From NCBI GenBank assembly GCA_002189035.1, contig NEEC01000004.1, positions 3,534,001-3,598,000 on the forward strand: a stretch of DNA of 64,000 bases, read 5' to 3'. Shown in pieces: positions 27,601 to 64,000 of this stretch. The notes below the pieces were generated by a model that saw only the letters and a program-made list of their open reading frames with translations, ran no database searches and had not been told where the DNA came from. Position 1 is the first letter of the stretch. Each line of letters begins with the position of its first letter. A program made the position numbers and the translations under genes. The stretch comes from Utricularia gibba. Its lineage: Eukaryota; Plantae; Magnoliophyta.

Positions 27601-27759
27601 CAAATCAATAATTAGAATCCAATTTTCCAAAATTTAATTCCAGTTTTAGTTATTGAGAAAACGAGAAAATGACATGGAATTTTTTTACGTGAAAATTACT
27701 GTGATGAAAAACCACAGAACTAGGGGATACAAGGATTGCAATGAATGCAAAATGCTCTT

Positions 27760-34530: not shown

Positions 34531-35479
34531 TTCTGCTTGGGCACCGTCAAGGTGTCGCCTTTTCTTTCCCTCGACTGTTTTGGGCTGTGTTACATATTTT
34601 TTTTGCGTGCTGTCTTTGTTTCGTTGTTTTAAAACAGCGAAATCGATTATTTTTAGAGATCTAAGCTTGGGGAACTTGTTTAGGTCTTGCCGTGGTAGTC
34701 ATTAGTTGCCATAGAATAGTTCATTTTGGAGGTGTTTTCACATGGATATAGATTCCCTTGTGTAACTTGGAAAGAACCTCAAAATGGTTATAACATATTG
34801 ACACTGCTGTGCTTATCATAAAATGGCGCTGTGATGTATTGCTGATTATCGTCATACTCTAGCGTGGTTTTGGATTGATCGCTCTGGGGATTCTTTACCT
34901 GCACCTTAATAATGTTGGTCATCACGTCTTAGGGGGGTGATGTTAGCATCTGTGGATCTTTGATGGTGGCTGATTTTTCACTATGACGATTTTATGATTC
35001 TCTTTTTTCGCCTACATTTTATGATTACATTGCACTCTTATGTAAAGCAATGTAATCAATTCCCATGTTCACTCTGCTTATCCCAATTTATATCTGCCTA
35101 CTTTGTCGTGAGCCATTGGGAATCAAATTCTACTGCTAGTCTGCGATGAATTCTAATTTTTCTCACCGGGTGCCTTAATTCAGATCCATTTGTTTTCAAG
35201 TGCACTTGGGGGCACCTGATTCCATTTCTGTTCCTGCAGCTGGGTCCTAATGCGCTGGTCATTCGTCCCTTTGGTGGCTCCTCTGACACATTACTGCTTT
35301 CTTTTGTTTTGTTTGCATCTGGAGTCTAGGCTTCCGAATAAGAAGTATGCGCTGTGGGTGCTACCTAAACCATGCTGTTGTGAATCAGAGTTCTTTTTCT
35401 CATGATAAGTGGCTTTGCGTATCGTAAACTGAACTAGAAAGAAGGTGCACCCTTTTGGTGAAATGAATAAAAGAAAGCA

Positions 35480-38910: not shown

Positions 38911-41900
38911 AATCTATTTTGGTATTGTAAACTATGTCATGGTTTTTTGTAAGATTACCTCTCATTACTACTGTAATATTAATGTTTAGCTTTATCACAT
39001 TGTCATTTACATTGCTTTTGAAACACCAAATCTGAATCACTTGAATTGAAAATGGCATTGTCGATTACAGTTACAGTAATAAGGATAATGACAACAACAA
39101 TTGATTGAAATGATAATCAACATGGTCTTTAACAATGCAAACATAACAATACACTTAACTCTAATTCGCAACACAGCAGCATACTTCTTCTTCAATCATC
39201 GACACTCCTACCAAGCTTATCTTCCAAACTAACATGAAATTATAATGCAAAAATGAACACAAAAAAATCTTTAAGTTATACAACAACACATACAAGCATC
39301 TTACAATGAAATCAATACACAAACACATGCTTCGGATATCTTCAATTCAATCTCGCATATCTTGTCAATTAGACTAAGATTCTCTTTCTGCAAAGCCTTT
39401 ATCTATGTGTATAACAATATATAAATCAGAAACCCAATTTATAAGGGCAAATGAGCCAACATGAACCAACCTTAGGTTTAGCTTTTGCAACCGACGGGAT
39501 GCTGATGCTTCGTCTGATCATTTCATGCTTTAGATCTTCCATCACTTAAATCAAACTATCCGGTACATTATCAAGTGTATACTCCTTATTCAAACTCTCA
39601 TCCTGACCCAATTATGATGATTCCTCCACTTCAACAACCAACTCTTCTACCATTGTTGTCTTATGCTTATGCCTAGGTCCATATGGCTGTTGGAATCAGA
39701 ATGTACACCTTCTCCAGTTGTATGATTTCATCATTTTGCACTAAAAGTAGGGTTAGGGTTCTTGTGAATTTGAGGGAAAAGGAATTAGCCGGCGTCAACT
39801 GCCTGAACATGAGATTTTATACTGTTGCATTGGGTCGACCTGGTTTAATCGAGTACTTCCATTTGTTCAATTAGTTTTTGGATGGAAAAGATTAAGGTTT
39901 TTCGAAATTGCTCAATAAAAGATTAAATTGTTACCAAAATGAAAATGTGAACTAAAAAACTACATGTATCAATAAGGGATTAAATAAGAGATTTCTCTGT
40001 TTTTTTTTTTTTTACATACTATTAGAATCTACAATCTTGAATTCCTTGAAAATCCACCTAGATCAATGTTCAAACTCTCAACTATTCTTATTCATAACTA
40101 TTGGCACTACATCTTGAGCAGCATATTCAATCTTTTAAGATTCTAATGATGATGACAACAATTCATTATGATCGTGAAATTAAAACTAGAAAGAGGCCTG
40201 ACCATGGCTACGGTTGGTGTTAGGACATGCAATTTCAGCAATATATAGAGACCAACATGATATAACTTGCTCCTCTACTTAGATTAGGAAAAATAGTATT
40301 TTATAAGGCAGTAGAAGTTCCCTCACTATTGGGAGGAGGTGTTGTCATGGTGTTTTGATGTATATTGATGATGAGCTCATTCCTAGAATTGAAAATTGCA
40401 AGTTAAATGATAGTTTTGTTATATGGCATACAAGATGAACATGGAAAGTACAGATAAAAATGATCATACTACATTAGTGTCTAGACCAAATGTTGCAAAG
40501 AAGTCTCTACCGAAAACTCTTGCTTCTAAGAGACCAACAAAAGAACACATGCTGATTCTAAGACTACACAATTGGAGTTCATTGTCCTTTTGCAGGGTAC
40601 AAGGTGTTGGATGATAATGCTGAAATCAAGACGAATCAAAAATTACAGAAGTTTGAGATAGAACAACATGAGTCAAGGGAAGAAGACGTGAGGGAGGAAG
40701 ACATGTACGAAAAACCCTCTATAGGGAATGTGGAAAAATACATATGTTAGGCTCATCATTATAGGCCCAATCAATAATATACTACATTATTTAGATAAGC
40801 AAAAATATATTGGATCTAGTGAAGACCCAAGTACAATTCAATAGAAGTTACTTTTACAAAAAGAGCTGATTATTGAACTTGCAAAAGAAGAACCAACTTG
40901 AAATCTGTAATCAAAAGACAAAACATCTCAAGATATTCAATCTTTATTTGTACTCTTATAAATACCATTTCAATATAGAAGAACAACAAGCTGTAGTTTT
41001 GCGATTCTCAATACAATACCCAAGTTCTCCAATATTAACATCTTGTTAACAATAACATCCTTCTATCAACAACAACTACAATGTTTTTTCTCAATATATA
41101 TTACCATGTTCAAAGTTATTCATTCAGTTATTCACCTTGTTCAAACTTCTAACACAGGGGATCCTAAATATAAATAAAAGGTAATTATATCCTTGTTCCT
41201 CTTGGTTTAGTTGGACGCAGATTCCATGCAGAATACCCTTGACAATATCATGTTTTCATCCTCAACTCTCAAACACTTCAGGTAAAAAAATGTAATCTTA
41301 GAGCTAAATAAAATTTTTTTGGATGATGGCCTTCTACCATCTACATCAATCCTCACAAAGGGAGAACATTCTATGCTACTATGACTTTTGAAATCATGCG
41401 GGATACGTCGTTAACATTCTCTCTTTGAGAAGCAGTGTTTTTGTCCCTTGAGTGCATAAAACTTCAGATAGTTTTAATGATCAGAGACAAAAATGCAACT
41501 TTTATAAATACTTGCTCAAACTCTAGATATGAGGAGAACGAGCACTAAAATACTACAGGCAAGTTTAAAATGCTTTTTCTTCTTCCCATTTTTGTAGTAA
41601 ATAAGTGATATTCAATGCATTTATACTGGGACATGTAGGAGATGTGAAAATTTGTAGCATACTAATTGAGAGACTAAGTACTTCAAGAGCTTTTGAATCT
41701 ATATAAAGTGTTTTTTCACTTGTATTCATGATTTTTCATTTACATGTCTTTCTTCTATTTATAGACAAATGTTTCATGACTGTTGGTTGTAGATACAGAG
41801 ATTCATTAGTGTAACATTACGCTAATGGCTTGCTCCATGGACAGTGATAGAAGTAAGAAGTTTCTTGGATTAGCGGTATACTACAGGAAGTTTGTGGAGG

Positions 41901-42169
41901 GATTCTCCAATTTGGCCAAGCCCCTTACACTAATCACCAGAAAAGAAACTACATTTATATGGAGCCAGGAATGCGAGGAAAGTTTTCAAAAGCTCAAGGA
42001 GAAGCTTACTTCTTCTCTGATACTTGTGCTTCCAAAATCAAACAAAAATTTTTCAATATACACAGACACGTCCAAGGAGGGTTTGGGGTGTGTTCTTATG
42101 CAAGAGGGGAGAGTCATAGCCTACACATCTAGGCAGCTCCGAAAACATGAGATGAACTACCCAACTCAC

Positions 42170-42623
42170 TGTGGAATAAAACGCACTAACACTTTTATTC
42201 TCAGGCTAGAAGTGTGGAGAGTGGTGTCTTCCATGTTGTGCAAGTGGAGCAGTTATGCTATGTGGGTGCTGGAGGAAGTGGGAGGCGCATGCACTAGTTT
42301 TTTGGCTGTCATAACTCTGTCTGTTTTGGTGTGATGCGGTGTGAGTTTCAGGGGTTGGAGGATTGGGTTCCAACTGATGTGATGTGTCTGCGTGTGTTGT
42401 AAAGCTGCTGTCTTTTGTAAGATGTAATCAAAGCATAGTGAATTGATCTCACCATGAGGTGTCCCACATTGGGTTTTACCTGGTTAATTCTGGTGTTTTG
42501 TGTTTGTTTTACTTTGTTTTGAAACCAGCGCTCAAGTTAAGCTAATCATAATCAACACTGACTCATCAAGCCTCAGAGTCTCACGAAGACAGCAGACTGG
42601 GCATCAACCTATTAGAGCCAACA
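42170..42623 (-). mobile_element. 454-bp solo LTR inserted in the RNase H domain of the chromovirus
   Basis: TG...CA termini (TGTGG...CAACA), perfect TSD CTCAC (42165-42169 / 42624-42628). Removing it rejoins the NYPTH|DMELAVVV motif. Strand is inferred. Confidence 0.9.
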
Positions 42624-44737: not shown

Positions 44738-46185
44738 TAGAGGTGGGTTCGGTTCAGAACCATATGGTTTCGGTTTGGAACCAAACGGTTCCAACGAAAC
44801 GTTGGTTCAAAAACCGCGGTTTGCTGTGGGCAACAGTTCCGGTTTCGGTTCGGAACCGTATCCCGAAACCTTGAACTGAACTAAAACTGGAACTGTACGG
44901 ACGGTTTCGGTTCAAAACCGGAACCGAAATTTGCGAACCGAACCATAACTGAAACTGATCAATTACTATTTATAAGTGTTTTCTAGGCACCCATATGAAT
45001 CATTGTGGGTGTTTGGTAGTGAAGTTTTAAATATTTATTAATTTTTTATGTTTTGATACTATCAAACAATATATTTGATAATATTAATTTTGTATTTAAC
45101 TAGATATATTATGTAATATACTATGTTAATTTATAAAAGATCTTAATTTAAATTACTTGATAAAATATCTAATAAAATATAATTTAAATTAATATAATTT
45201 GTGATTTAAATAAATTAAATAAATGACTAAATTATTAATATTTGAATGTACATTTGATAAAATTAAATTTTTTGAAATAAATACAACAAGATTACAAATT
45301 ATATAAAACGAATAGAATTATTATTTATATATTATTTCTTGAAAGTATTGTGTATTTTTCAAATTAAAATCAAAATATAATCTATTTCATGAATTTTTTT
45401 CAAACTTCATATATTTTGAAAACAAAAAAAAAAACAAATTAAATTTACAAAATTAACATAACATATTTCATGTTTGTTGTGCGGAATAGGTTCCAGACAC
45501 CCTAAATATCTAGAGAAGATCCCAAGCACCCTCATTAATGGATCAGAGTGCCTGGACCACCTATAACCACAACCCTAACCACAAACTTAAAGCACACGCT
45601 GTCTACGCACACTTAACATTTTTGGAAATAAATACAAAAATATTACAAATCATATAAAACCAATAAAGTTATTTTTTTATATTTTAATAGCAAGCTTTTA
45701 TATAATCTTTTGTAAATATTATGTATTTTTCAAATTAAAATCAAAATATTATTTATTTTCATAAATAGCGGGAACATTTTTCTAGACACCCACAAGCCAC
45801 GGAAGAACATTTGAGACCATTCCCCGACCACCCACATATGCTCATGTAAGTGTGTCGTGAGAGCGTCTGAGACCATTTTCCAAGCACCCACATCCCTCGT
45901 GAGTGTGTGTCTGGGAAGGGGTGTTTGAAAAGATTTTTCAAGTACTCACTTTCGTCATATGGGTGTCTAAAACAAGTATATGAAATCATATATATTTATT
46001 TAATTTTTTTTAATTTTTTAATCTAAACTGTACAGTTCACGAGTCGAAACCATTGGTTCCACGGTTCCAATTATATCGAATTGAACCGAAACCGTACGGA
46101 CGTCGATCTACTGGAATCAAACCGGAACTAGAACCGACAGTTTCGGTTCGAATCGCGGTTCTGGTTCGAACCGAACCCACCTCTA
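44738..46185. mobile_element. Non-autonomous hAT-family DNA transposon inserted in the chromovirus 3' LTR
   Basis: Perfect 18-bp TIR TAGAGGTGGGTTCGGTTC; 8-bp TSD CACTGCAC/CACTGCAT; dense subterminal AAACCG/GAACCG motifs at both ends; AT-rich noncoding interior. Confidence 0.9.
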
Positions 46186-46263: not shown

Positions 46264-49200
46264 TGTTGGATGAAGTTGATGATCAAATTGAAGGCACTTT
46301 GACAATTTCTATCACTTCTGTACCTGAAAATAAGGATTCGGTCGAAGAGAGTCTCAACGAGAAGAAGATGAAAATCTACTCTCTTCGGAAGCTGGGTCTG
46401 ATTGTATTGGGTTGCAGCCAAATGAAGTGTAAGTCAACTAATGGATCTGATGTTGAGCCTAGTCCTCCAAGCCCATTGACCCAATGAAGACTGAAACATG
46501 GACTACTCTTGCTGAAGCCTATGGAAAAAATCAACAAACCTTAGTTCTGGAGAAGGCAATGAAATAGCAGCTATTTGAGAATATAAAAATGCTTCCTGTT
46601 CAAAGCATAGCAACCTTCTCGGACTCCTTGAATAAAGTGGTACATAATATGAAGCAACTCGGCGAAGTAGTGGATGACAACCGGATTCGCATAAAGATTA
46701 TAAGCATTGTTCCTCCTCAATATGCCTCTACCATAAATGCCTCTATCTTTGATGGCAACATTCATACCATGACACCTAAACAAGTGGTGAAAGGTCTCAA
46801 AGGAGTAGAAATGCGCCGGCAAAACTACGAGCAACAGCACTCTCATGAAGCAACATTCAAAGCTCAAGTCACACCTACCTCCCCTGCAGTGCAAAAAAAA
46901 CGACTCACCACAAGCTAGGCTTGCACCTGTCAGCACAGAGAGTTTCAATCCTTAGATTCAATGCCCGTTCTGTAAACAGAGAAATCATCTACCCTCTACA
47001 TGCTGGTGGCACCCTGAAGCAGTGTGCGCTTGCTGTAAGCTGCCGGGTCACATGGAGAAAGTATGCCCCCTAAAGAAGTATCACCTGCTAGGTGGGAAAT
47101 CTAAAAGCATAGAAAAAATCACAGGGAAATTATCAGATGTAACCCTTTCAGAAGCTTCTAATAAAAGTGCTGTGGAACTGGAACTTTACTCTATGTGTCG
47201 AAGCACTCTACTCACATCCTTTACAGATCTAGGAAAACAAGGAGCCTGGCTGGTTGATAGTGGGTGCAGCCACCATCTCACTAATGATCTCTCTCTGTTC
47301 AACACCTTCTCATTCTCATAAGGTAAATACGTTCAAGTTGCTGATGGAAAGAGTATACCAGTCAAGGGACAATGAATCGTGTGCATCGAGACACCACAGA
47401 AACTTCTAAAACTCAACGATGTCTACTATGTGCCGGATGCTTCACACAATCTATTGAGCTCCGGACAACTAGTAGAGAAACAATTCAAAGTGCATCTACA
47501 AGACAATCAGTACATAATAAGAGATATCGACAACAACATTGTACTCACCTCACCTATGGTAGAACACATCTTTCCTCTCCTCAGCTCAAACAAAGTCGAA
47601 AACCTTCAATCTCAAGTTTGTTACTCAGCAGCTAAAGACTCAGCACTATGGCACAGTAGGCTAGGCCACCATTATTATGGCTCTATAACCACACTTTGGA
47701 GCAAGGGTCTAGCCACAGGTATTCCTCACCTTATACACCAAGAGAAAACCTGCAGTGTTTGCCTTCAATGCAAACAAAGTCGAAAACCTTTTCCCAAAAC
47801 TGGTACAACAGCATCTCATAAGCTTGATATTGTCCTTTCAGATGTCTGTGGACTGATGAGAATGGTCTCCAATGGTGGAAACAGATATTACGTTTTTTTC
47901 ATAGATGCCTACACTAAGTATACTTGGCTCTACCTTCTCAAGAAAAAATCAAAGGTGCTGCAACATTTTTTGGTCTTCAAAGCTATGGCAGAAGCACAAA
48001 GCAGAAGAAAGATTCTTACCTTAAGATCTAACAATGGAGGCGAATACGTCTCAAATGAGTTGAAAAATATCTGTGAAGTAAATGGAATTGTACATCAGTT
48101 TGCCGCTCCTTACACCCCACAGCAAAATGGGATATGCGAGAGAAAGAACCGTACTATTATGAATATGGCCAGATGTCTCCTACACGAAAAGAAGTTACCT
48201 CTACAATTCTGGGGAGAGGCTGTTAACACAACTTTCTACATCCTCAACCGTCTTCCCACCAAAGGAACGCAAGGGAATAAATCACCATATGAACTTTGGT
48301 TCAATAGAAGACCAGATTTAGAGCACCAGCGAATTTTCGGATCAGTATGCTACATCCTTAAGCCAAAAGAACTGAGAGCCAAGCTAGATACAAAATCTGA
48401 TATGAGTATATTTATAGGCTATTCAAACACAAGTGAGGCGTAGCGGGTGTTAAATCTCACCTCCCACAAGGTTGAAATTAGTTGAGATGTTCAAGTATAT
48501 GAGTTTAAAATTTTTGATTGGAAGAAACTATCAGCCATCTTCAAAACAGACACTTCTACATCTCATGTGCTCAATCTATTTCCTGAAAATGAAGACAGGA
48601 ACTATATTACCTCAGAAATTCCGGGGAGCTTCAACCTCTCTAGTTTCTCTACAGCGACGCGGGTAGATACTGATGTATCCAACACCAACTCTCTCCTGAC
48701 TGTTAATGATGATTCTATACAATCCAGTGCTAGTCGGGAGGACCCTACTGTTTTTCTTTATGAATAGAATCAATGCAGTGCAGAACTCAATACTTCTGAC
48801 AACATTGAAGCTCCTGTTCCCCCAGATGACAACATAGAAATACCCAATCACTCTAAACAATATTTGCCTGAAACGTATGGCACTGCTTCCGATATCCCTG
48901 GAACACACCTCCTGCTGAATGAAGAACTCGACAGAGTATCTCCTCATCTCCAGACTGTACCTGAAAATATTACTGAATTAGCAGAGGATTCTGATGCAGG
49001 AGGAAACGAAACTAGTGATGCAAATACACCACAAGGAATCATTCCCAGAAAACTAATTGAAGTGACAAATGAATATTTGGAGAATATAGTTCACGATTAT
49101 GAATCTGATGACAACTTAACTCATCACTTCCAAAGCTGCAACTCAAGTGACAATGAAGACTATCTAAGCGACTCGGATAAGCCTCTAGTCCGAAAATACA

Positions 49201-51211
49201 AACTACTCAAGGACATAATTGGCTGTACTCATCTCATGATTGAAGATCGAGATATTGCAGCACGAATGAGATGTCCAAAATGGAAAAAAATCAATGGATG
49301 AAGAACTCAACTCAATCCAAGAACATGGTATGTAGGAGATGGTCGACAGACCTGCTAGTGCCAAAATCCTAAACTTGAAATGGGTGCACAAGGAGAAATT
49401 AAATCCGGACGGCACCCACAACCGCTTCAAATCTCGGATAGTGGCAAAAGGCTATCTTCAACAAGCCGGGATTGATTACTGCGAGACATTTGCTCCTGTT
49501 GCCCGTCTTGATACCGTCAAGCTTATCATCGCCTTGGTAGCCTGCAACAACTGGAAATTGCACCATTTAAATATCAAGTGTGCCTTTCTAAATGGAGAAT
49601 TACATGAAAACATATATGTCCACCCGCCTCCAGGTTACCAACTTAAGAATGGGAAAGACAAAGTTTTGAAGCTCAAGAAAGCACTCTATGGACTAAAGCA
49701 GGCGCCTAAAGAATGGTATTCTACCATTGATTCTTATTTTATTGAGCAGGGGTATAATAGGAGCAAGAATGATACTACCCTCTATGCGCTTGAGACCGAA
49801 GCAGGGAAAGTTATAATATCTCTCTATGTAGACGATATTTTGATTACGGGAAGCGATACTAACCTTATTGAGGAACAAAAAACCAGACTGAAAAGCCGTT
49901 TTGAACTGGTGGATCTTGGTCTAACTCGGTACTTTCTAGGCCTAGAGATCCTGCAAAGCGAAGATTACATATTTGTGAATCAAAAAGGTATATTGAAGAT
50001 TTACTGATCACATATGGTCTTCACGATGCTAAGGGATGCAAGTTTCCATTCCCACCAGAAGCCAAACATAAACTCAGAAATTGTGAAGATGAATATCACA
50101 GCCCGCAAGACTATCAACGTCTCATTGGAGCCCTTCTCTATCTAACCGCTACTAGGCCTGATATTACTTTCGCAGTAGCCTACCTATCAAGATTTATGCA
50201 TAAATCGTATACTACCCACATGGAAGTAGCAAGGAAAATCCTCAAGTATTTAAAGTCATCCTCTGACCTCGGTCTATACTTTATAATAAGCACTAACCCT
50301 TCATTGAAAGGTTTTGTGGATTCCGATTTCGCAGGTGATGAAGATACTTGTAACTCTACCACAGGATATCTATTCACTTTGGGCTCAGCAACCTTTGCAT
50401 GGAACAGCAGAAAACAAAGCACCATCACTCAATCCTCGGCAAAGGCCGAGTATATAACTGGTGCAGCCGCGGCGAATCACACTCAATGGCTGATCAAACT
50501 TTGCGAAGATCTGCACATTCAAATCAACAAGCCAGTCATTCTAAAAATTGACAATAAATCGGCTATCAGCATAACACAAAATCCTGTGATGTTCGGACGC
50601 ACCAAGCACATAAAGATTAAGTATCATATCTTGCAGGAATATGTGAAAGAAGGATCTATCAAGCTTGAGTACCTACCCTTTGAAATGCAGGTCGCAGACA
50701 TTTTAACGAAGTGCCTCTTTTCCTCAAACTTCCATAATTTGCGAGAACTATTAGGGTTGAGGAGGAACCCTTCAGAAACTGATGAAGACCTTCAATTAAA
50801 TCATCAAGGAGGAATGTTGGAAGTTGATGATCAAATTGAAGGCACTTCGACAATTTCTATCACTTCTGTACCTGAAAATAAGGATTCGGTCGAAGAGAGT
50901 CTCAACGAGAAGAAGATGAACATCTACTCTCTTTGGAAGCTGGGTCTGATTGTATTGGGTTGCAGCCAAATGAAGTGTAAGTCAGCTAATGGGTTTGATG
51001 TTGAGCCCAATCCTCCAAGCCCATTGACCCAATGAAGACTGAAACATAACGACAGGACAACGGCTCACTCTGACAGAACAATGGCTATTTTCTCTTATAT
51101 AAATAAGCCATGTAACATCCAAGAATTGACTTGCTTTCTAAGCCCTTCATACAACAGCTCTCAAAGTTTTCTTTAGCAATATCAAATCCTTGCATCTGTG
51201 GCCATATAACA
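46264..51211 (+). mobile_element. Ty1/copia element with half-deleted 5' LTR (46264-46499), interrupted gag-pol, and 3' LTR 50815-51211
   Basis: Zn knuckle CACCKLPGHMEKVCP, protease WLVDSGCSHHLT, LWHSRLGH, integrase LRSNNGGEY / TPQQNGICERKNRT, RT YVDDILITG, RNase H RTKHIKIKYH / ADILTK. PPT caaggaggaa. The LTRs share ~235 bp with ~8 substitutions and one 3-bp indel. Several stops and frameshifts. Confidence 0.95.
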
Positions 51212-51821
51212 CCCCAGAGGCAACGTGGCTTGCCGCGGAATGCAATTCCCTAGGACATCAGGGCGCCAACCCCATGAATTCACAAATCCTTTTATTTAAG
51301 GCTTAAGTGCCTTCTTTTCCGATTTGCTTAATCGCAATGAATGTGACAGTCTAAGTCCTTACTTTGCACGCAGGGTAGGAGCACCTGGAGGGGGCATTCG
51401 ACGCTGAGAACCTCTGATCCATCGGGTTGAGGAAATGAGCATGCCCCTATGCCACTCATCTTGAGTGTGAAATTTTCATTGACATACTTTTATTTAAATA
51501 AAATGTTAAGACCTTCTTCCCTTAATGTCTCGATGAAAACGTTTTTATTTTTGTTGTGATTTTATTGCCTCTCGTGCGATGTTGCTGTTTCTTGCTATTA
51601 GTCAGGCTGTTAGCCGCCTTGCGGCGAGTGGGTGAAACAGACGTGGTAAATTTATGATGAAAAAGGCGTGACAATAGCAATCAATCCATTGTAAGTCCCA
51701 CCATTGCACCACTGCTCAACCTCACCCATTTCTCCCATAAAGATGAATGAGTGCAACCCCTTGTCTAGTCAGTGGGTTATTTTCTTGAAATGCTCCATTA
51801 TTCACAATTCTACATCCAATG

Positions 51822-54039
51822 TGATAAACGAAAAATAGGCTCCAAATATCCCATTGCCTTCACATGTTCTTCCTCCATCAATTCGGGACATTTATCAACG
51901 ATGTGTCCCATTCTGTGGTAGTTCCCGCAGGGCATATTCTTAGCTTGGAATAAAAAGAGTTCCTTCATCATCTCAGACATGGCTGCCACATTTTTCGTCA
52001 GCTCATTTTCTGATGACTTTGGCTTGTATTCCAGCTCATATACTCTTCTATTCAAGGCCTGTTTTCTGATTATGTGCCTGGAATGCTCAGCCAACTCCTC
52101 AAGTAGCGCAAGAGCTTCTGTGGAAGTTTTTTTTCTCAAAAATCCACCTGTTGCAGAGTCCACCAAGGCCCTATCTATGTATAGAAGACCATCATAAAAA
52201 TACTTGATCAATGCATTGGTCTGAAATCCATGGTGTGGACAGGAGCCTAGCAGGTTTTTAAAGCGTTCCCAATATTCATGTAGAGATTCTCCACTTGTTT
52301 GCTCAATGTCACTGATCTCCTTCCTTATTCCTCCAGCTTTTGAAGCAGGGAATTATTTGCTGAGAAATACATTCTTCATCCCACTCCAATCTGTGATACT
52401 TCCCGGCTTCAAAGAGTTAAACCATGTTTTTGCACTCCCTTCCAGTGTAAATTGGAATGCCCTCAAACAGATGGCATCCTCAGTCATACCAGCACTCTTA
52501 AAAGAGGTGCAAACAGCAGTCACGTTGTCAAGATGTTCATGGGTTCTCACCCACTTTTCCATAATACTTGGGCAGAAAATTAATCATAGCTGGCTTCAAT
52601 TCGTTGGCTGTGTCATCAGAGAACCTAATACACAGCCCTCTGTACGTATGGTCAGCTGCATCAAGCTCATTCAGGGTCTTCTCCTATTCTGCCATATTGA
52701 AATTAGTTTGAGCAACAGCAGCGAGTCTGCTCAACCTTGCTGCTTCTCTCACTCTTGTGCGGTTCTTGCTGATAGTTCTCTCGATTTCTGGATGGAAAAC
52801 AAGATCACCTACACTAGAAGAACGCAAATGCATCAACCGAATCACAAAACAATTAAACACCGCTCCCCGGAAACGGCGCCAATTTGATAAACGAAAAATT
52901 GTACAAGTCGTTAATTGCAAATTTTCCTATCAAATAAATTTATAACCTAACCCACATTCAAGTATAAAACAATTATGAGCATAGTGATTAGGGTCGAACA
53001 CGAAGAGCAGGTGCTTGTCAAGTGATTAGCCAAAGCATGAAATCAGTGTCATGTTGGTAAAATTGGTCTTAACTAGGACTAACTCAGGACTACAACGAAA
53101 TACAGTAAAGAAAAGTAACAAGTTTGGATTCGATAGTTTCTGGAATGGAATGGGTGATACCTTGGAACTCTTAAGGGATGTATGCATATCACTAAACAAG
53201 CTCACATAAATCAAAAATCATTCAACTAACTCACAAGATCTAGGTCTACCCAGATTCTTGTTTTTCCCCCTAATCTTTGGTCTACCTCTAATTAGGGTTG
53301 TTAGTTGGGTTTCACTACTTCCCCCTCCTGGATCTATCCTGCTTTGTTAAGGAAGTAGTGTGACTTATGATTTATTAGGTCTAAGGATGGATTAGCATAT
53401 TTCTCCTCTTCTCACCCCAAGGCATCCCCTGTAAGTGCTTAGCTACTCATGGTAATGGAAAGTAAAACATCTTCATAGCAGATACTGAGCAATATCTTGG
53501 CTACAAATGCTAAACAACAACGAGCAATATGAAGCAAAAGTAGGACAAACACTTCGTTCACATAGGAAATCCAAATCTAGTCTTAGCTAGGAATAGTAAA
53601 CATGAAGAACGAAAATAATTTTTCAAGAGAAGCTGTGTTCTTCTAGTTCGTCGTCCCCTCCTTCTTCTTCTCTTAGAAAAATCTCCAGAAACTTCTCTTG
53701 AAATCTCCAAAGGGAGATCTCCTTCTCTCTCCAACTTTCCTCCATTTTTGTTCAAAATCTTCCTTTTTCACCTCCTTGGACTTTGTGTGTACTCTTCTTC
53801 AAACTTCTGTCACCTTTCCTGCCACCACACTATTCATACTCGGCTCCCTTGGATTTGTGCGACCCATGCTGCACTACTCGAAAGGAACTGTTAGAATTGC
53901 GATTTAGTCCCAACTAAGACTAAAAGTGCACTCCTACAATACTTATGTGCAAAAATATAGAAACAGGCAATTAAGCTTACTTTTTGTAGCATAAAATGAG
54001 TAAATTCCATGCATTGAGCCACTAAAAAATGTGTTATCA
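51822..54039 (-). mobile_element. Internally deleted Athila-like Ty3/gypsy element: 5' LTR 52885-54039, PBS, gag, 15-bp stub of 3' LTR
   Basis: LTR TGATAACAC...CGTTTATCA followed by PBS aattggcgccgtttccgggga. Gag 'EDAICLRAFQFTLEGSAKTWFNSLKPGSITDWSGMKNVFLSK' and 'YFYDGL...DSATGG'. Ends ...TTTTTCGTTTATCA at 51822 with perfect TSD CAATG (51817-51821 / 54040-54044). Confidence 0.92.
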
Positions 54040-55100
54040 CAATGCTATCGGGATTTTGTCATTTTCCATTTCAACTACTTTTTCATTTTTCTTGGACACT
54101 TCTTTTTATTGCTTCAGGTTGGTTTGGGCAATATTAAACATAATATGAGTTGATGCTGTGACACGGATTATAATAATTAGAAAACAAATTAAGTTTATAA
54201 ACAATCAAAATTTGACTTATCAAAAAATAATAAACAACCAACGTTTAATTTTTTCAATGTTTGACATTCATTTTTATTTTTATAATTTTATGTAATTTTT
54301 ACATTTAACTTCTTTATAGGTTAAAGTGAGCAATATATTTGAAAATATTTGATTAAGAGAATCAATAATAATAATAAGTTAATTTTATAAACGAATTGTG
54401 TATGAAATTGTTTTTTATAATTTTTTCTAAACACAAAGATATTTTACATATTTTTAAAGAGGGGTAGACTTAAAACTTATTTGCCGAAATTTAAAAATAT
54501 ATATATTATCAATGAAGAATTAATATAAATAAGAATAAAGTGTAAAATTATCTTTTTATTAATTGGAATTAAACTATCTATTCTAAATATGCATGCTATT
54601 TTAAATATATATTGGTAAATATATATATTTTCATTATATACTACCTATTATTTAAATACAAAAAATTAAATATTTAAAATACTCTTTCAAACGCAAACTG
54701 TTTATTTTAAAAAAACTCAGGTAAAATAATCGAGTGTGCCTTAATTGCTGTCTGGAAATTTAAACAATTTTATGAATTAGAAAAAAAAAAAAACGGAGAT
54801 GCTTCTTCTTCTTCTTTTTTTGTTTTGTTTTGTTTTAACATGGATTGTGCATGAGACGGCAGGGGCACCCCGCAGATTTGGGGAATGCTGTTTGAACCGT
54901 TCGTCATTCCATTTTTCTCTCGACCGATGCTCTTCACTTCTTCTCTCGTTTCTCTGCAATGCATTCCTCATTTCTTCTCCATCACCTCGACGCTGAACCT
55001 TGTTTCTACCACATTTTCACCTAGAACAAAACCCATTTCTCCAACGGAGTGGTTGCTCTGTTGATCGGGGGTGCCATCACTCTCGTCTGTGGCCGGCGAT

Positions 55101-56356
55101 ATGGCTTCCGTTAACAACCATGCAATGGACGGCGACCACCCAGATATCGAGAATGGCGCAGATGACTGGCCCATCGACCCGGATTTCTCCGATCCCTTCG
55201 ACATTGCCAACACCAAGAAGGCGTCGCGAGAATCGCTCAAGCGTTGGAGGGTAAGATTTCGAGCATCCTGGTTTTTATTGCAGGAACTCGTGTTTTTCTA
55301 CCACCCGAACTCCTCTCATGTTTTTATAACAGCAAGCTGCGCTTGTGCTCAATGCTACCCGCCGGTTTCGATACACGTTAGATTTGAGAAAAGATGAAGA
55401 GCAAGATAAGAGGAGGCGTATGATTAGAGCGCATGCTCAAGTCATTCGGGTGATGAAGTCTAAATGCCATCAACTACCATTTCATTCCTTTTTAACTTCT
55501 TGATGTTAAACTTGCAATTCCATCGTAGGCTGCTTTGCTCTTCAAATTGGCTGGGCAGAGAGCGATAGGTGCTTCTGTATTCTCTATCTTCTGCTTTTGT
55601 GATAATTCGAAAATCATCATCTTTAAATAGGGTTTCATTCAGTTCTAGGTACTTCAGTTTCTCCTCCCTCTCCAAGTGGGGAGTATGGCATTGCACTTGA
55701 GCAGCTTGCTTCAATGAATAAGGACCAGAATGTTTCTGCACTGGAGCAGTATGGAGGGGCAAGATGACTGCATCCTTTATACCACTTTCATGTTTTTCTT
55801 GCAATGCGTGTACCCCACAAACTAATATCAACACAACTTCAGGTTAAAGGTCTATCAGAGATGCTGAAGACAAACTCTGAGACAGGGATTGATGGAGATG
55901 ATGTATTGGAAAGAAGGAAGGCCTATGGGTCAAATACGTATCCTGTGAAAAAAGGAAGAAGTTTCTTGGTAATGATTCATTTGTATTCTATGGCAATAAG
56001 TCTTTTGTCTCTTCTATTGTATTTTGGAGCTTTTGTTCACATCTTTTTTTTTTGAACATTCCGTTTCTGCTCCTTACCCAGTTATTTTTGTGCAGATGTT
56101 CCTATGGGACGCTTGGCAAGATTTGACTCTCATTATCTTAATCTTTGCTGCTGTAATATCATTGGTTCTTGGAATAAAAACTGAGGTTATTTTGCCTTCT
56201 CGGAGATTCGACACACTGTTGTCTAGATCATGATGAACCTGAGCTGCAGTCATGCCTAATTTGAGTAATTTCTGTTGCGTTTATAGGGCATCCAACAAGG
56301 ATGGTATGATGGGGGAAGCATTGCCTTTGCAGTTTTTCTGGTTATTTTTGTCACAG
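55101..56356 (+). pseudogene. ACA9: Truncated autoinhibited P2B Ca2+-ATPase (ACA9-like), exons 1-7 only, copy 1
   Basis: MASVNN...DPFDIANTKKASRESLKRWR|QAALVLNATRRFRYTLDL...RRRMIRAHAQVIR|AALLFKLAG...|VKGLSEMLKT...GSNTYPVKKGRSFL|MFLWDAWQDLTLIILI...|GWYDGGSIAFAVFLVIFVT. Intron 7 is cut at 56600. 'MIRAHAQVIR' is the ACA9-type motif as recalled. Intron 4 (55759-55842) is GC-AG. Confidence 0.9.
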
Positions 56357-56600
56357 GTGATTCCAATTTATTCTCCATCAAAGTTGCAAACATTCTGTTC
56401 TCCAATTTATATTTTCTTTTGACACCGAGGAAGTATTAACTATGAACTGTAATTTTTTAAAAGTGAGGCTCTTTTCTCAAATTTTTTCAGCCTAATGATT
56501 TTTCTGATTGGTGTGTTTGATTCATAAGTGATTTATTTGATTCTATTTTGATTGCATTCATTAATTTAAAATTGATCTGTTAGTGATGATGCACATTCAT

Positions 56601-58506
56601 AAAAATCCACCTGTTGCAGAGTCCACCAAGGCCCTATCTATGTATAGAAGACCATCATAAAAATACTTGATCAATGCATTGGTCTGAAATCCATGGTGTG
56701 GACAGGAGCCTAGCAGGTTTTTAAAGCGTTCCCAATATTCATGTAGAGATTCTCCACTTGTTTGCTCAATGTCACTGATCTCCTTCCTTATTCCTCCAGC
56801 TTTTGAAGCAGGGAATTATTTGCTGAGAAATACATTCTTCATCCCACTCCAATCTGTGATACTTCCCGGCTTCAAAGAGTTAAACCATGTTTTTGCACTC
56901 CCTTCCAGTGTAAATTGGAATGCCCTCAAACAGATGGCATCCTCAGTCATACCAGCACTCTTAAAAGAGGTGCAAACAGCAGTCACGTTGTCAAGATGTT
57001 CATGGGTTCTCACCCACTTTTCCATAATACTTGGGCAGAAAATTAATCATAGCTGGCTTCAATTCGTTGGCTGTGTCATCAGAGAACCTAATACACAGCC
57101 CTCTGTACGTATGGTCAGCTGCATCAAGCTCATTCAGGGTCTTCTCCTATTCTGCCATATTGAAATTAGTTTGAGCAACAGCAGCGAGTCTGCTCAACCT
57201 TGCTGCTTCTCTCACTCTTGTGCGGTTCTTGCTGATAGTTCTCTCGATTTCTGGATGGAAAACAAGATCACCTACACTAGAAGAACGCAAATGCATCAAC
57301 CGAATCACAAAACAATTAAACACCGCTCCCCGGAAACGGCGCCAATTTGATAAACGAAAAATTGTACAAGTCGTTAATTGCAAATTTTCCTATCAAATAA
57401 ATTTATAACCTAACCCACATTCAAGTATAAAACAATTATGAGCATAGTGATTAGGGTCGAACACGAAGAGCAGGTGCTTGTCAAGTGATTAGCCAAAGCA
57501 TGAAATCAGTGTCATGTTGGTAAAATTGGTCTTAACTAGGACTAACTCAGGACTACAACGAAATACAGTAAAGAAAAGTAACAAGTTTGGATTCGATAGT
57601 TTCTGGAATGGAATGGGTGATACCTTGGAACTCTTAAGGGATGTATGCATATCACTAAACAAGCTCACATAAATCAAAAATCATTCAACTAACTCACAAG
57701 ATCTAGGTCTACCCAGATTCTTGTTTTTCCCCCTAATCTTTGGTCTACCTCTAATTAGGGTTGTTAGTTGGGTTTCACTACTTCCCCCTCCTGGATCTAT
57801 CCTGCTTTGTTAAGGAAGTAGTGTGACTTATGATTTATTAGGTCTAAGGATGGATTAGCATATTTCTCCTCTTCTCACCCCAAGGCATCCCCCTGTAAGT
57901 GCTTAGCTACTCATGGTAATGGAAAGTAAAACATCTTCATAGCAGATACTGAGCAATATCTTGGCTACAAATGCTAAACAACAACGAGCAATATGAAGCA
58001 AAAGTAGGACAAACACTTCGTTCACATAGGAAATCCAAATCTAGTCTTAGCTAGGAATAGTAAACATGAAGAACGAAAATAATTTTTCAAGAGAAGCTGT
58101 GTTCTTCTAGTTCGTCGTCCCCTCCTTCTTCTTCTCTTAGAAAAATCTCCAGAAACTTCTCTTGAAATCTCCAAAGGGAGATCTCCTTCTCTCTCCAACT
58201 TTCCTCCATTTTTGTTCAAAATCTTCCTTTTTCACCTCCTTGGACTTTGTGTGTACTCTTCTTCAAACTTCTGTCACCTTTCCTGCCACCACACTATTCA
58301 TACTCGGCTCCCTTGGATTTGTGTTGCGACCCATGCTGCACTACTCGAAAGGAACTGTTAGAATTGCGATTTAGTCCCAACTAAGACTAAAAGTGCACTC
58401 CTACAATACTTATGTGCAAAAATATAGAAACAGGCAATTAAGCTTACTTTTTGTAGCATAAAATGAGTAAATTCCATGCATTGAGCCACTAAAAAATGTG
58501 TTATCA
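56601..58506 (-). mobile_element. Second, 3'-truncated copy of the Athila-like element (LTR 57348-58506, PBS, partial gag)
   Basis: Near-identical to 52138-54039; abuts ACA intron 7 of copy 1. Confidence 0.93.
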
Positions 58507-59566
58507 CAATGCTATCGGGATTTTGTCATTTTCCATTTCAACTACTTTTTCATTTTTCTTGGACACTTCTTTTTATTGCTTCAGGTTGGTTTGGGCAATA
58601 TTAAACATAATATGAGTTGATGCTGTGACACGGATTATAATAATTAGAAAACAAATTAAGTTTATAAACAATCAAAATTTGACTTATCAAAAAATAATAA
58701 ACAACCAACGTTTAATTTTTTCAATGTTTGACATTCATTTTTATTTTTATAATTTTATGTAATTTTTACATTTAACTTCTTTATAGGTTAAAGTGAGCAA
58801 TATATTTGAAAATATTTGATTAAGAGAATCAATAATAATAATAAGTTAATTTTATAAACGAATTGTGTATGAAATTGTTTTTTATAATTTTTTCTAAACA
58901 CAAAGATATTTTACATATTTTTAAAGAGGGGTAGACTTAAAACTTATTTGCCGAAATTTAAAAATATATATATTATCAATGAAGAATTAATATAAATAAG
59001 AATAAAGTGTAAAATTATCTTTTTATTAATTGGAATTAAACTATCTATTCTAAATATGCATGCTATTTTAAATATATATTGGTAAATATATATATTTTCA
59101 TTATATACTACCTATTATTTAAATACAAAAAATTAAATATTTAAAATACTCTTTCAAACGCAAACTGTTTATTTTAAAAAAACTCAGGTAAAATAATCGA
59201 GTGTGCCTTAATTGCTGTCTGGAAATTTAAACAATTTTATGAATTAGAAAAAAAAAAAAACGGAGATGCTTCTTCTTCTTCTTTTTTTGTTTTGTTTTGT
59301 TTTAACATGGATTGTGCATGAGACGGCAGGGGCACCCCGCAGATTTGGGGAATGCTGTTTGAACCGTTCGTCATTCCATTTTTCTCTCGACCGATGCTCT
59401 TCACTTCTTCTCTCGTTTCTCTGCAATGCATTCCTCATTTCTTCTCCATCACCTCGACGCTGAACCTTGTTTCTACCACATTTTCACCTAGAACAAAACC
59501 CATTTCTCCAACGGAGTGGTTGCTCTGTTGATCGGGGTGCCATCACTCTCGTCTGTGGCCGGCGAT

Positions 59567-60822
59567 ATGGCTTCCGTTAACAACCATGCAATGGACGGCG
59601 ACCACCCAGATATCGAGAATGGCGCAGATGACTGGCCCATCGACCCGGATTTCTCCGATCCCTTCGACATTGCCAACACCAAGAAGGCGTCGCGAGAATC
59701 GCTCAAGCGTTGGAGGGTAAGATTTCGAGCATCCTGGTTTTTATTGCAGGAACTCGTGTTTTTCTACCACCCGAACTCCTCTCATGTTTTTATAACAGCA
59801 AGCTGCGCTTGTGCTCAATGCTACCCGCCGGTTTCGATACACGTTAGATTTGAGAAAAGATGAAGAGCAAGATAAGAGGAGGCGTATGATTAGAGCGCAT
59901 GCTCAAGTCATTCGGGTGATGAAGTCTAAATGCCATCAACTACCATTTCATTCCTTTTTAACTTCTTGATGTTAAACTTGCAATTCCATCGTAGGCTGCT
60001 TTGCTCTTCAAATTGGCTGGGCAGAGAGCGATAGGTGCTTCTGTATTCTCTATCTTCTGCTTTTGTGATAATTCGAAAATCATCATCTTTAAATAGGGTT
60101 TCATTCAGTTCTAGGTACTTCAGTTTCTCCTCCCTCTCCAAGTGGGGAGTATGGCATTGCACTTGAGCAGCTTGCTTCAATGAATAAGGACCAGAATGTT
60201 TCTGCACTGGAGCAGTATGGAGGGGCAAGATGACTGCATCCTTTATACCACTTTCATGTTTTTCTTGCAATGCGTGTACCCCACAAACTAATATCAACAC
60301 AACTTCAGGTTAAAGGTCTATCAGAGATGCTGAAGACAAACTCTGAGACAGGGATTGATGGAGATGATGTATTGGAAAGAAGGAAGGCCTATGGGTCAAA
60401 TACGTATCCTGTGAAAAAAGGAAGAAGTTTCTTGGTAATGATTCATTTGTATTCTATGGCAATAAGTCTTTTGTCTCTTCTATTGTATTTTGGAGCTTTT
60501 GTTCACATCTTTTTTTTTTGAACATTCCGTTTCTGCTCCTTACCCAGTTATTTTTGTGCAGATGTTCCTATGGGACGCTTGGCAAGATTTGACTCTCATT
60601 ATCTTAATCTTTGCTGCTGTAATATCATTGGTTCTTGGAATAAAAACTGAGGTTATTTTGCCTTCTCGGAGATTCGACACACTGTTGTCTAGATCATGAT
60701 GAACCTGAGCTGCAGTCATGCCTAATTTGAGTAATTTCTGTTGCGTTTATAGGGCATCCAACAAGGATGGTATGATGGGGGAAGCATTGCCTTTGCAGTT
60801 TTTCTGGTTATTTTTGTCACAG
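59567..60822 (+). pseudogene. ACA9: Truncated ACA9-like Ca2+-ATPase, exons 1-7 only, copy 2
   Basis: Same exons as copy 1; intron 7 is cut at 61066. Confidence 0.9.
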
Positions 60823-61066
60823 GTGATTCCAATTTATTCTCCATCAAAGTTGCAAACATTCTGTTCTCCAATTTATATTTTCTTTTGACACCGAGGAAGT
60901 ATTAACTATGAACTGTAATTTTTTAAAAGTGAGGCTCTTTTCTCAAATTTTTTCAGCCTAATGATTTTTCTGATTGGTGTGTTTGATTCATAAGTGATTT
61001 ATTTGATTCTATTTTGATTGCATTCATTAATTTAAAATTGATCTGTTAGTGATGATGCACATTCAT

Positions 61067-62972
61067 AAAAATCCACCTGTTGCAGAGTCCACCAAGGCCC
61101 TATCTATGTATAGAAGACCATCATAAAAATACTTGATCAATGCATTGGTCTGAAATCCATGGTGTGGACAGGAGCCTAGCAGGTTTTTAAAGCGTTCCCA
61201 ATATTCATGTAGAGATTCTCCACTTGTTTGCTCAATGTCACTGATCTCCTTCCTTATTCCTCCAGCTTTTGAAGCAGGGAATTATTTGCTGAGAAATACA
61301 TTCTTCATCCCACTCCAATCTGTGATACTTCCCGGCTTCAAAGAGTTAAACCATGTTTTTGCACTCCCTTCCAGTGTAAATTGGAATGCCCTCAAACAGA
61401 TGGCATCCTCAGTCATACCAGCACTCTTAAAAGAGGTGCAAACAGCAGTCACGTTGTCAAGATGTTCATGGGTTCTCACCCACTTTTCCATAATACTTGG
61501 GCAGAAAATTAATCATAGCTGGCTTCAATTCGTTGGCTGTGTCATCAGAGAACCTAATACACAGCCCTCTGTACGTATGGTCAGCTGCATCAAGCTCATT
61601 CAGGGTCTTCTCCTATTCTGCCATATTGAAATTAGTTTGAGCAACAGCAGCGAGTCTGCTCAACCTTGCTGCTTCTCTCACTCTTGTGCGGTTCTTGCTG
61701 ATAGTTCTCTCGATTTCTGGATGGAAAACAAGATCACCTACACTAGAAGAACGCAAATGCATCAACCGAATCACAAAACAATTAAACACCGCTCCCCGGA
61801 AACGGCGCCAATTTGATAAACGAAAAATTGTACAAGTCGTTAATTGCAAATTTTCCTATCAAATAAATTTATAACCTAACCCACATTCAAGTATAAAACA
61901 ATTATGAGCATAGTGATTAGGGTCGAACACGAAGAGCAGGTGCTTGTCAAGTGATTAGCCAAAGCATGAAATCAGTGTCATGTTGGTAAAATTGGTCTTA
62001 ACTAGGACTAACTCAGGACTACAACGAAATACAGTAAAGAAAAGTAACAAGTTTGGATTCGATAGTTTCTGGAATGGAATGGGTGATACCTTGGAACTCT
62101 TAAGGGATGTATGCATATCACTAAACAAGCTCACATAAATCAAAAATCATTCAACTAACTCACAAGATCTAGGTCTACCCAGATTCTTGTTTTTCCCCCT
62201 AATCTTTGGTCTACCTCTAATTAGGGTTGTTAGTTGGGTTTCACTACTTCCCCCTCCTGGATCTATCCTGCTTTGTTAAGGAAGTAGTGTGACTTATGAT
62301 TTATTAGGTCTAAGGATGGATTAGCATATTTCTCCTCTTCTCACCCCAAGGCATCCCCCTGTAAGTGCTTAGCTACTCATGGTAATGGAAAGTAAAACAT
62401 CTTCATAGCAGATACTGAGCAATATCTTGGCTACAAATGCTAAACAACAACGAGCAATATGAAGCAAAAGTAGGACAAACACTTCGTTCACATAGGAAAT
62501 CCAAATCTAGTCTTAGCTAGGAATAGTAAACATGAAGAACGAAAATAATTTTTCAAGAGAAGCTGTGTTCTTCTAGTTCGTCGTCCCCTCCTTCTTCTTC
62601 TCTTAGAAAAATCTCCAGAAACTTCTCTTGAAATCTCCAAAGGGAGATCTCCTTCTCTCTCCAACTTTCCTCCATTTTTGTTCAAAATCTTCCTTTTTCA
62701 CCTCCTTGGACTTTGTGTGTACTCTTCTTCAAACTTCTGTCACCTTTCCTGCCACCACACTATTCATACTCGGCTCCCTTGGATTTGTGTTGCGACCCAT
62801 GCTGCACTACTCGAAAGGAACTGTTAGAATTGCGATTTAGTCCCAACTAAGACTAAAAGTGCACTCCTACAATACTTATGTGCAAAAATATAGAAACAGG
62901 CAATTAAGCTTACTTTTTGTAGCATAAAATGAGTAAATTCCATGCATTGAGCCACTAAAAAATGTGTTATCA
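61067..62972 (-). mobile_element. Third, 3'-truncated copy of the Athila-like element (LTR 61814-62972)
   Basis: Near-identical to the first two copies. Confidence 0.93.
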
Positions 62973-64000
62973 CAATGCTATCGGGATTTTGTCATTTTCC
63001 ATTTCAACTACTTTTTCATTTTTCTTGGACACTTCTTTTATTGCTTCAGGTTGGTTTGGGCAATATTAAACATAATATGAGTTGATGCTGTGACACGGAT
63101 TATAATAATTAGAAAACAAATTAAGTTTATAAACAATCAAAATTTGACTTATCAAAAAAATAATAAACAACCAACGTTTAATTTTTTCAATGTTTGACAT
63201 TCATTTTTATTTTATAATTTTATGTAATTTTTACATTTAACTTCTTTATAGGTTAAAGTGAGCAATATATTTGAAAATATTTGATTAAGAGAATCAATAA
63301 TAATAATAAGTTAATTTTATAAACGAATTGTGTATGAAATTGTTTTTTATAATTTTTCTAAACACAAAGATATTTTACATATTTTTAAAGAGGGGTAGAC
63401 TTAAAACTTATTTGCCGAAATTTAAAAATATATATATTATCAATGAAGAATTAATATAAATAAGAATAAAGTGTAAAATTATCTTTTATTAATTGGAATT
63501 AAACTATCTATTCTAAATATGCATGCTATTTTAAATATATATTGGTAAATATATATATTTTCATTATATACTACCTATTATTTAAATACAAAAAATTAAA
63601 TATTTAAAATACTCTTTCAAACGCAAACTGTTTATTTTAAAAAAACTCAGGTAAAATAATCGAGTGTGCCTTAATTGCTGTCTGGAAATTTAAACAATTT
63701 TATGAATTAGAAAAAAAAAAAAACGGAGATGCTTCTTCTTCTTCTTTTTTTGTTTTGTTTTGTTTTAACATGGATTGTGCATGAGACGGCAGGGCACCCC
63801 GCAGATTTGGGGAATGCTGTTTGAACCGTTCGTCATTCCATTTTTCTCTCGACCGATGCTCTTCACTTCTTCTCTCGTTTCTCTGCAATGCATTCCTCAT
63901 TTCTTCTCCATCACCTCGACGCTGAACCTTGTTTCTACCACATTTTCACCTAGAACAAAACCCATTTCTCCAACGGAGTGGTTGCTCTGTTGATCGGGGG
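62973..64000 (+). promoter_or_regulatory. Promoter/5' leader of a third ACA9-like copy whose ATG lies just beyond the window
   Basis: Near-identical to the upstream regions of copies 1 and 2 (from 54040 and 58507); the window ends ~30 bp before the expected ATG. Confidence 0.8.

Follow-up and report, generated by a model that had tools for sequence, protein, structure and literature searches.

The pump exons described here fit the gene structure of the ACA8/ACA9/ACA10 clade of Arabidopsis plasma-membrane P2B Ca2+-ATPases, which is one of many small exons. As the first-pass annotation of this DNA had stated, and as the literature bears out, the N-termini of these pumps bind calmodulin and are autoinhibitory, and ACA9 is required for pollen-tube growth and fertilization in Arabidopsis. 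It is well established that silencing in plants can be triggered by direct repeats in tandem and by converging transcription; the tandem repeats at maize b1 and the inverted repeat at PAI in Arabidopsis are examples of such loci. MicroProteins and truncated dominant-negative paralogues have been reviewed (PMC3794426), and background is available on eccDNA-derived or rolling-circle segments that are re-inserted into chromosomes (PMC9324142, PMC10948907).

At the right end of the window (the whole 64,000-nt stretch of Utricularia gibba DNA that was analysed), a 4.46-kb unit is repeated in which a gag fragment, a primer-binding site (PBS) and a long terminal repeat (LTR) are followed by upstream DNA and then by pump exons 1-7 (Table 1). 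Like young 3'-truncated tandem gene duplications in plants, the locus consists of head-to-tail DNA copies that retain promoter, introns and 5' exons, share a single novel junction and show near-zero divergence; it differs from them in having more than two copies (at least 2.66) and in that nearly half of the unit is the 5' end of a retrotransposon in the opposite orientation. We infer that the array is probably a real amplification, physically present in the genome. Our preferred reading, to which we give a probability of roughly 0.6, is that a chimeric segment was truly amplified in tandem, at the DNA level and very recently, and that the extra copies likely have no evolved function.

Table 1. 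Features of the tandem array and its left flank (window coordinates).
Feature	Position	Strand	Remarks
Left flank, gag C-terminal part with degenerate zinc knuckle	51810..52137	-	ORF continuous into unit 1
Repeat unit 1	52138..56600	+	4463 nt
gag N-terminal fragment and 5' leader	52138..52863	-	repeated in units 2 and 3; PF03732 Retrotrans_gag
PBS-like 18-mer	52864..52881	-	3 nt from LTR end; also at 57327-57344 and 61793-61810
Probable 5' LTR	52885..54039	-	1,155 bp; inverted termini TGATAA...TTATCA
Pump upstream region and 5' UTR	54040..55100	+	1.06 kb, AT-rich, 28% GC
Exon 1	55101..55250	+	50 codons; start codon and first half of autoinhibitory domain; GT donor
Exon 2	55333..55449	+	second half of autoinhibitory/calmodulin-binding domain
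Exon 3	55529..55568	+	40 nt; placed by AG/GT sites and frame; 13 codons, too short for its own search
Exon 4	55649..55758	+	ACA8 (8QMP) residues 85-118, E=4.6e-6; GC-AG intron follows
Exon 5, Cation_ATPase_N	55843..55968	+	PF00690, E=1.2e-9; ACA8 residues 120-162
Exon 6, end of Cation_ATPase_N and TM1	56096..56185	+	PF00690; ACA8 residues 164-192; peak hydropathy 3.2
Exon 7, first ~15 hydrophobic residues of TM2	56287..56356	+	ACA8 residues 193-215; ends in phase 1
Intron 7, first 244 nt	56357..56600	+	terminates at novel junction with gag fragment
Repeat unit 2	56601..61066	+	4466 nt; against unit 1, three indel sites and no substitution
Repeat unit 3, partial	61067..64000	+	six private homopolymer indels at 63035-63791

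Self-BLAST and MAFFT alignment gave a repeat period of 4463-4467 nt with all copies head-to-tail, which establishes the array in the form first proposed, with boundaries exactly at 52138, 56600/56601 and 61066/61067. Its copy number of 2.66 was likewise reproduced ((64000-52138+1)/4464.5); unit 3 is truncated by the window end 30 nt short of its start codon, and the array runs on beyond 64000. The two internal junctions are identical in sequence, and the ORFs that span them are just 25 aa long. Tandem Repeats Finder reported no array, only because its longest period is 500. The near-absence of substitutions claimed earlier proved to be a complete one, with none among the copies across ~11.9 kb aligned; the differences are confined to 12 gap columns, comprising eight 1-nt homopolymer-length indels and one 3-nt non-homopolymer indel. 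The latter sets unit 1 apart from units 2 and 3, suggesting that these are physically distinct copies.

This same pattern bears on an alternative origin in the assembly itself, in which the assembler made the junction or most of the copies and the genome has one or far fewer. Zero substitutions, with nearly every difference a homopolymer-length error, would also be expected from a noisy long-read assembly with a mis-estimated copy number, and unit 3, in the interior, shows more noise than the first two units, as happens where reads lack unique placement; thus, at least the copy number is soft. However, a precise non-homologous junction that is repeated identically requires read support for its consensus, the repeat is direct rather than inverted, lies inside a Mb-scale contig and is bordered on its left by native sequence, and the 3-nt indel distinguishes unit 1 from the others. 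The usual artefacts of long-read assembly are inverted chimeras, concatenated circles and two-copy haplotype duplications at gaps, and several direct copies that share a single exact new junction, lie more than 1.3 Mb into their contig and run on past 64000 are not of that shape. One identical novel junction common to head-to-tail copies beside a native flank is as expected of genuine tandem amplification, and we consider an artefact unlikely. Nine ATG-start ORFs of the unit and the flanks, together with one copia ORF, were looked up by exact sequence and gave no match (0/10) in a collection without proteins of this organism; a PPR word search there likewise returned no near match, the best, at 61%, being in Lamiales.

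The left edge of the array lies within a retrotransposon. A 133-aa minus-strand ORF (51810-52211) is unbroken across position 52138, and its counterpart in units 2 and 3 is shortened to 25 aa by the junction; as this gag ORF extends 328 nt outside the array, the left flank is native. The gag of the element is split into three ORFs, and ORF 52353-52562 matches PF03732 with E=7.7e-6. Together with the PBS beside the LTR end and the short inverted termini, this gag domain identifies an LTR retrotransposon of the Ty3/gypsy type. The PBS-like 18-mer presumably corresponds to the 3' end of tRNA-Asp, with 1 mismatch; the window holds no tRNA genes for comparison. Sensitive self-BLAST detected no second LTR in 1-52137, its only matches outside the array being three weak ones (~70-130 nt, at 761-1154 and near 29.9 kb), and the outer edge of the LTR was placed by the terminal inverted repeat, since the window has no further copy of the LTR outside the array. 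There is also no minus-strand pol to the left of the array, and a complete element was not found; thus, what lies at the left edge of the array is a 5' fragment of an element. The space to the left of the array is occupied by a plus-strand copia element.

The orientation of this fragment raises the possibility of an RNA-silencing locus, in which a leftward LTR and a rightward pump promoter would yield double-stranded RNA, small RNAs or repeat-induced DNA methylation that dampens the intact pump gene. The geometry is as this would demand: gag and PBS place the LTR on the minus strand, so its transcription would run leftwards and leave the same unit's pump exons behind, and from unit 2 onward each LTR aims into intron 7 and exons 7-1 of the preceding unit. 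Like silencing loci of the kind exemplified by maize b1 and Arabidopsis PAI, the array has many direct repeat copies beside a gene that they resemble, with promoters opposed inside it, but the likeness is one of geometry only. Against such a locus, LTR activity is hypothetical, the element is truncated with its gag in three ORFs, and an Rfam search of the unit returned no match. We regard silencing as a rather improbable explanation of the array.

The plus-strand part of the unit was assigned to the pump exon by exon. The N-terminal domain for calmodulin binding and autoinhibition (Pfam PF12515) is split over two exons, with positions 3-21 in exon 1 (17.2 bits) and positions 22-45 in exon 2 (31.2 bits; cut-off 25), and exon 2 matches the ACA8 peptide complexed with calmodulin (4AQR_D) with E=1.1e-10. 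Exons 2 and 4-7 are colinear and gapless with ACA8 residues 30-65 and 85-215. These matches uphold the proposal that the coding part includes the calmodulin-binding autoinhibitory N-terminus of an ACA8/9/10-type P2B pump; ACA9-like motifs fit the exons, but we take the choice of ACA9 over ACA8 or ACA10 as a lead only, ACA8 being the sole solved chain compared. The seven-exon model stood in its exons and frame, with intron 4 needing a GC donor (GCAAGA at 55759) to keep the frame, but its total is 703 nt rather than the 709 nt first given. As had been described, exons 1-7 are complete in both full units, which are cut inside intron 7, and they are identical between the two. The statement that only the autoinhibitory N-terminus has been amplified is too narrow: the retrotransposon 5' end (gag fragment, PBS and LTR) makes up 43% of each unit, and the coding part also includes Cation_ATPase_N, TM1 and most of TM2.

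Compared with the ACA8/ACA9/ACA10 pumps, the units stop inside TM2 and are missing the remainder of the actuator domain, the phosphorylation and nucleotide-binding domains and TM3-TM10. No part of this catalytic core was found, and pump-like sequence continuing from exon 7 does not occur within 52138-64000. Because the unit stops 244 nt into intron 7, where the gag fragment restarts, no unit encodes a pump; each is a 3'-truncated half-gene carrying a putative promoter. If intron 7 were retained, 27 extra codons would precede a TAA at 56437-56439, giving an ORF of 261 codons, in agreement with the read-through tail and ~260-aa product predicted at first. If exon 7 were spliced onto exon 2 of the next unit, the frame would shift and a stop would follow after 21 codons.

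One could imagine the 261-aa product, supplied at higher dosage through the array, as anchored in the membrane and soaking up calmodulin, perhaps also BON copines, or as inhibiting the full pump in trans. Exons 1-2 together encode all of the PF12515 module, and exons 1-3 the stretches that align to both calmodulin sites of ACA8 (residues 42-62 and 74-96); TM1 is intact, ~1 kb of upstream sequence is kept in every unit, and isolated N-terminal segments of ACA proteins (residues 1-101) bind BON1-3 in assays. As in microProteins, a regulatory or interaction module is kept in the predicted product and the catalytic part is absent. Unlike microProteins, however, this product would be membrane-embedded, would come from reading through an intron and not from a short gene proper and, at 261 aa, would exceed the classical examples. 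Its shortened TM2, followed by 27 intron-encoded residues, makes misfolding and degradation likely, retained-intron transcripts with early stops are typical targets of decay, and the array is too young to have been shaped by selection. A decoy of this kind is thus very improbable. The fuller proposal, that the array supplies at amplified dosage a membrane-anchored fragment of an ACA9-type pump, with both calmodulin sites and the BON-binding segment, and that this fragment sequesters calmodulin or copines or inhibits the intact neighbouring pump in trans, we consider more doubtful still. If true, such a fragment would retune Ca2+ extrusion, for example in pollen tubes, and a P-type ATPase would have acquired a natural dominant-negative regulator through partial gene duplication.

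Under the preferred reading of a young tandem amplification, the presence of introns 1-6, the promoter region and the retroelement 5' end inside the unit indicates that DNA was copied, not RNA. Retroposition or LTR transduction was rejected as an origin, given that the unit retains its introns and promoter and that element and gene are transcribed in divergent directions. The starting event would have been one non-homologous join, which connected intron 7 in a pump gene of the ACA8/9/10 type with the gag region of a gypsy-type retrotransposon, itself truncated and lying in opposite orientation just upstream of the pump promoter. The chimeric unit may then have been multiplied through unequal sister-chromatid exchange or through a circular or rolling-circle intermediate. 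A multimerised circle, as in eccDNA-derived insertions, would likewise give identical units with one closure junction; this pattern is not specific, however, as one duplication followed by unequal exchange gives the same, and the discriminating right end lies beyond the window. Computed with mutation rates of 7e-9 to 1.3e-8, zero substitutions limit the age of the array to less than about 2-4 x 10^4 (roughly 20,000-36,000) generations or years in each lineage.

Every transcript of a unit would end early, at the stop in retained intron 7 or at the frameshift stop, and we take the additional copies to be, most likely, by-products, either silenced or giving unproductive RNA, rather than an evolved regulator. 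We base this lack of function on the youth of the array and the truncation of its units; intact putative promoters and a complete calmodulin-binding module leave room for some effect.

Under either reading, genuine or artefactual, the array is not a new kind of system. Should it be an artefact, it would serve as a warning on copy number in this assembly. If it is physically real, it offers a view of a structural mutation very soon after its origin, in a plant with a compact genome. One illegitimate join of a gene intron to a neighbouring retrotransposon would have been amplified over no more than tens of thousands of generations, leaving several half-genes with promoters, and LTRs that fire outward, next to a Ca2+ pump of an essential type. 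It would then provide a natural test of how such arrays form and of what fresh partial duplicates do, be it nothing, silencing or the production of a dominant-negative protein.

The head-to-tail array at the right end of the window is, in our reading, a genuine amplification of very recent date, its additional half-genes being by-products that are either silent or unproductive (probability roughly 0.6). A repeat finder returned three-copy families spaced 4462–4467 nt apart from position 52133 to the window end, and self-BLAST of 52001–56700 against 56601–61166 and 61067–64000 gave identities of 99.89% and 99.66%, respectively, with zero mismatches in both matches and gap openings only. The unit boundaries emerging from self-BLAST and MAFFT (52138, 56600/56601 and 61066/61067) are exactly those of the first-pass annotation, and its figure of 2.66 copies was reproduced exactly; this count covers the window only, the right end of the array lying beyond 64000, and in the partial unit 3 the window end falls 30 nt short of the would-be start codon. 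Tandem Repeats Finder did not report the array because its period limit is 500. The MAFFT alignment of the three units contains 12 variable columns, made up of eight 1-nt homopolymer-run differences and one 3-nt indel, while the exon sequences of units 1 and 2 are identical. Six homopolymer-length differences private to unit 3 fall within an AT-rich 760 nt (63035–63791) where units 1 and 2 agree, a pattern that fits weaker consensus polishing inside a long identical array.

Features of the array unit (coordinates of unit 1) and of the neighbouring Ty1/copia element
Feature	Position	Strand	Details
Ty1/copia element	46272-51047	plus	apparently complete; LTRs 228 bp, 96.5% identical (46272-46499, 50820-51047)
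Ty1/copia ORF	47379-48443		integrase/GAG-pre-integrase
Ty1/copia ORF	49339-50007		RVT_2
gag fragment and leader	52138-52863	minus	PF03732, E=7.7e-6
Primer-binding-site-like sequence	52864-52881	minus	18 nt
Probable LTR	52885-54039		1,155 bp; termini TGATAA...TTATCA
Pump upstream sequence	54040-55100		1,061 nt, 28% GC
Pump exons and introns	55101-56356	plus	seven exons, six introns
Exon 1	55101-55250	plus	
Exon 2	55333-55449	plus	
Exon 3	55529-55568	plus	
Exon 4	55649-55758	plus	
Exon 5	55843-55968	plus	
Exon 6	56096-56185	plus	
Exon 7	56287-56356	plus	
Intron 7, start	56357-56600		first 244 nt, abutting the next unit's gag fragment

The array had been described as amplifying only the autoinhibitory N-terminus of a Ca2+ pump; the N-terminus is indeed present, but "only" is too narrow because retroelement sequence fills 43% of the unit. 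Exons 1–7 total 703 nt and end in phase 1, which agrees with the earlier frame but not with the earlier length of 709 nt. Intron 4 is of the GC-AG type (donor GCAAGA; 55759–55842 in unit 1, from 60225 in unit 2), and no in-frame GT donor was found nearby; the GC donor is thus required, and is the sole one that preserves both the frame and gap-free colinearity with ACA8. Protein evidence was gathered one exon at a time. The N-terminal autoinhibitory domain of Ca2+-ATPases, PF12515, is split between exon 1 (profile positions 3–21) and exon 2 (positions 22–45; 31.2 bits, cut-off 25). The peptide of ACA8 that was crystallised in complex with calmodulin (4AQR_D) is matched by exon 2 at E=1.1e-10. 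PF00690 spans exons 5–6, and exons 4 to 7 match ACA8 (8QMP) at residues 85–118, 120–162, 164–192 and 193–215, abutting and gap-free. On these exon-wise matches, exons 1–7 are predicted to encode the whole of the regulatory N-terminus, followed by the Cation_ATPase_N segment, TM1 and some 15 TM2 residues; the PF12515 and 4AQR_D matches bear out the proposal of an autoinhibitory, calmodulin-binding N-terminus. The predicted fragment shares every feature testable in exons 1–7 with ACA8/9/10-type P2B pumps, and by these it belongs to that family. Motifs of ACA9 fit the fragment, and are a lead toward ACA9 over ACA8 or ACA10.

In the retroelement half, the primer-binding-site-like 18-mer is presumably the complement of the 3' end of plant tRNA-Asp, with one mismatch; no tRNA genes were found within the window. 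A gag ORF with a degenerate zinc knuckle (51810–52211) crosses the array edge unbroken, extending 328 nt leftward, and unit 1 therefore sits in its native retroelement context. Neither a minus-strand pol nor a second LTR was found left of the array within the window, so the gag-bearing element at this edge is a 5' fragment only. About 760 nt without long ORFs separates it from the Ty1/copia element, just left of which two pairs of ~60-nt AT-rich direct repeats (45267–45758; spacing 351–371 nt, 86–87% identity) suggest a small, older local duplication. Further left lie a gypsy-type RT_RNaseH_2 fragment (41825–42334, plus strand) of a degraded element distinct from that of the array, and a weak match to the inner array LTR (761–1154, plus strand; 68–78% over 76–133 nt), possibly the remnant of a related element.

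Two other genes were seen in the window. A long intronless PPR ORF, At1g16830-like (14058–15677, plus strand), has at most 61% identity to any protein in the collection searched, and its best relatives are from Lamiales (Paulownia 61%, Genlisea 60% over 82%, Sesamum 58%; also Castilleja and Buddleja). An F-box and Kelch-repeat gene (35480–36966, minus strand) appears as two adjacent ORFs (F-box 36463–36966, Kelch 35480–36484), a split that could reflect an intron, a frameshift or a dropped assembly base.

An assembly artefact, toward which the near-exclusive confinement of differences to homopolymer errors and the greater noise of interior unit 3 would point, seems unlikely. The intron 7::gag junction is the same at both internal joins, and an exact novel junction must occur in reads to enter the consensus; moreover, the array lies >1.3 Mb inside the contig with a native left flank, and the 3-nt indel, which is not a homopolymer difference, sets unit 1 apart from units 2 and 3. 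The repeat is also direct and multi-copy, whereas a missed adapter yields an inverted chimera and a false haplotype duplication has two copies, placed at a gap. We consider it highly probable that the array is physically real, its exact copy number being uncertain. ORFs spanning the unit junctions are 25 aa, and none of ten ORFs from the window was present in an exact protein-collection look-up.

Retention of intron 7 adds 27 codons before a TAA (56437–56439), giving an ORF of 261 codons and reproducing the read-through tail predicted earlier, while splicing of exon 7 to the next unit's exon 2 would require an intron of 3,442 nt and would put the reading out of frame, ending at a stop 21 codons on. 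Unlike functional P2B pumps, the units lack the catalytic core; they are not pumps, and none is able to make one. The LTR was confirmed to point into the preceding unit, where, on an alternative but rather improbable reading, antisense transcription driven by it would give rise to small RNAs. ACA8, ACA9 and ACA10 form a single plasma-membrane clade, ACA9 is expressed in pollen and is required for fertilisation and the growth of pollen tubes, and BON copines are bound by N-terminal segments (residues 1–101) in isolation (PMC6032332); the literature premises of the first-pass annotation on the ACA8/9/10 N-terminus and on ACA9 in the pollen tube and fertilisation thus hold. Its idea of a decoy, in which the truncated protein would act as a sponge or trans-inhibitor, is nevertheless very improbable: the predicted fragment keeps calmodulin- and BON-type N-terminal modules and TM1, so that such action is possible in principle, but TM2 breaks off early and continues into residues encoded by an intron, RNA decay typically acts on transcripts of this type, and selection has not had time to shape so young an array.

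Retroposition and LTR read-out transduction are ruled out, as the unit includes promoter and introns and transcription of the element runs opposite to that of the gene; copying therefore took place at the DNA level. Because a single non-homologous join, intron 7::gag, is common to all units, we infer one founding event followed by multiplication. That join would have formed once, and multiplication could have proceeded by an initial duplication and then unequal sister-chromatid exchange, or by multimerisation of a circle; both fit. With 0 substitutions in 11.86 kb, a star tree bounds the age at <~36,000 generations (mutation rate 7e-9) or <~19,000 years (mutation rate 1.3e-8) per lineage. The array adds a case to a known class, recent tandem duplications of part of a gene, here entangled with a retrotransposon; the decoy reading, if shown, would be interesting.
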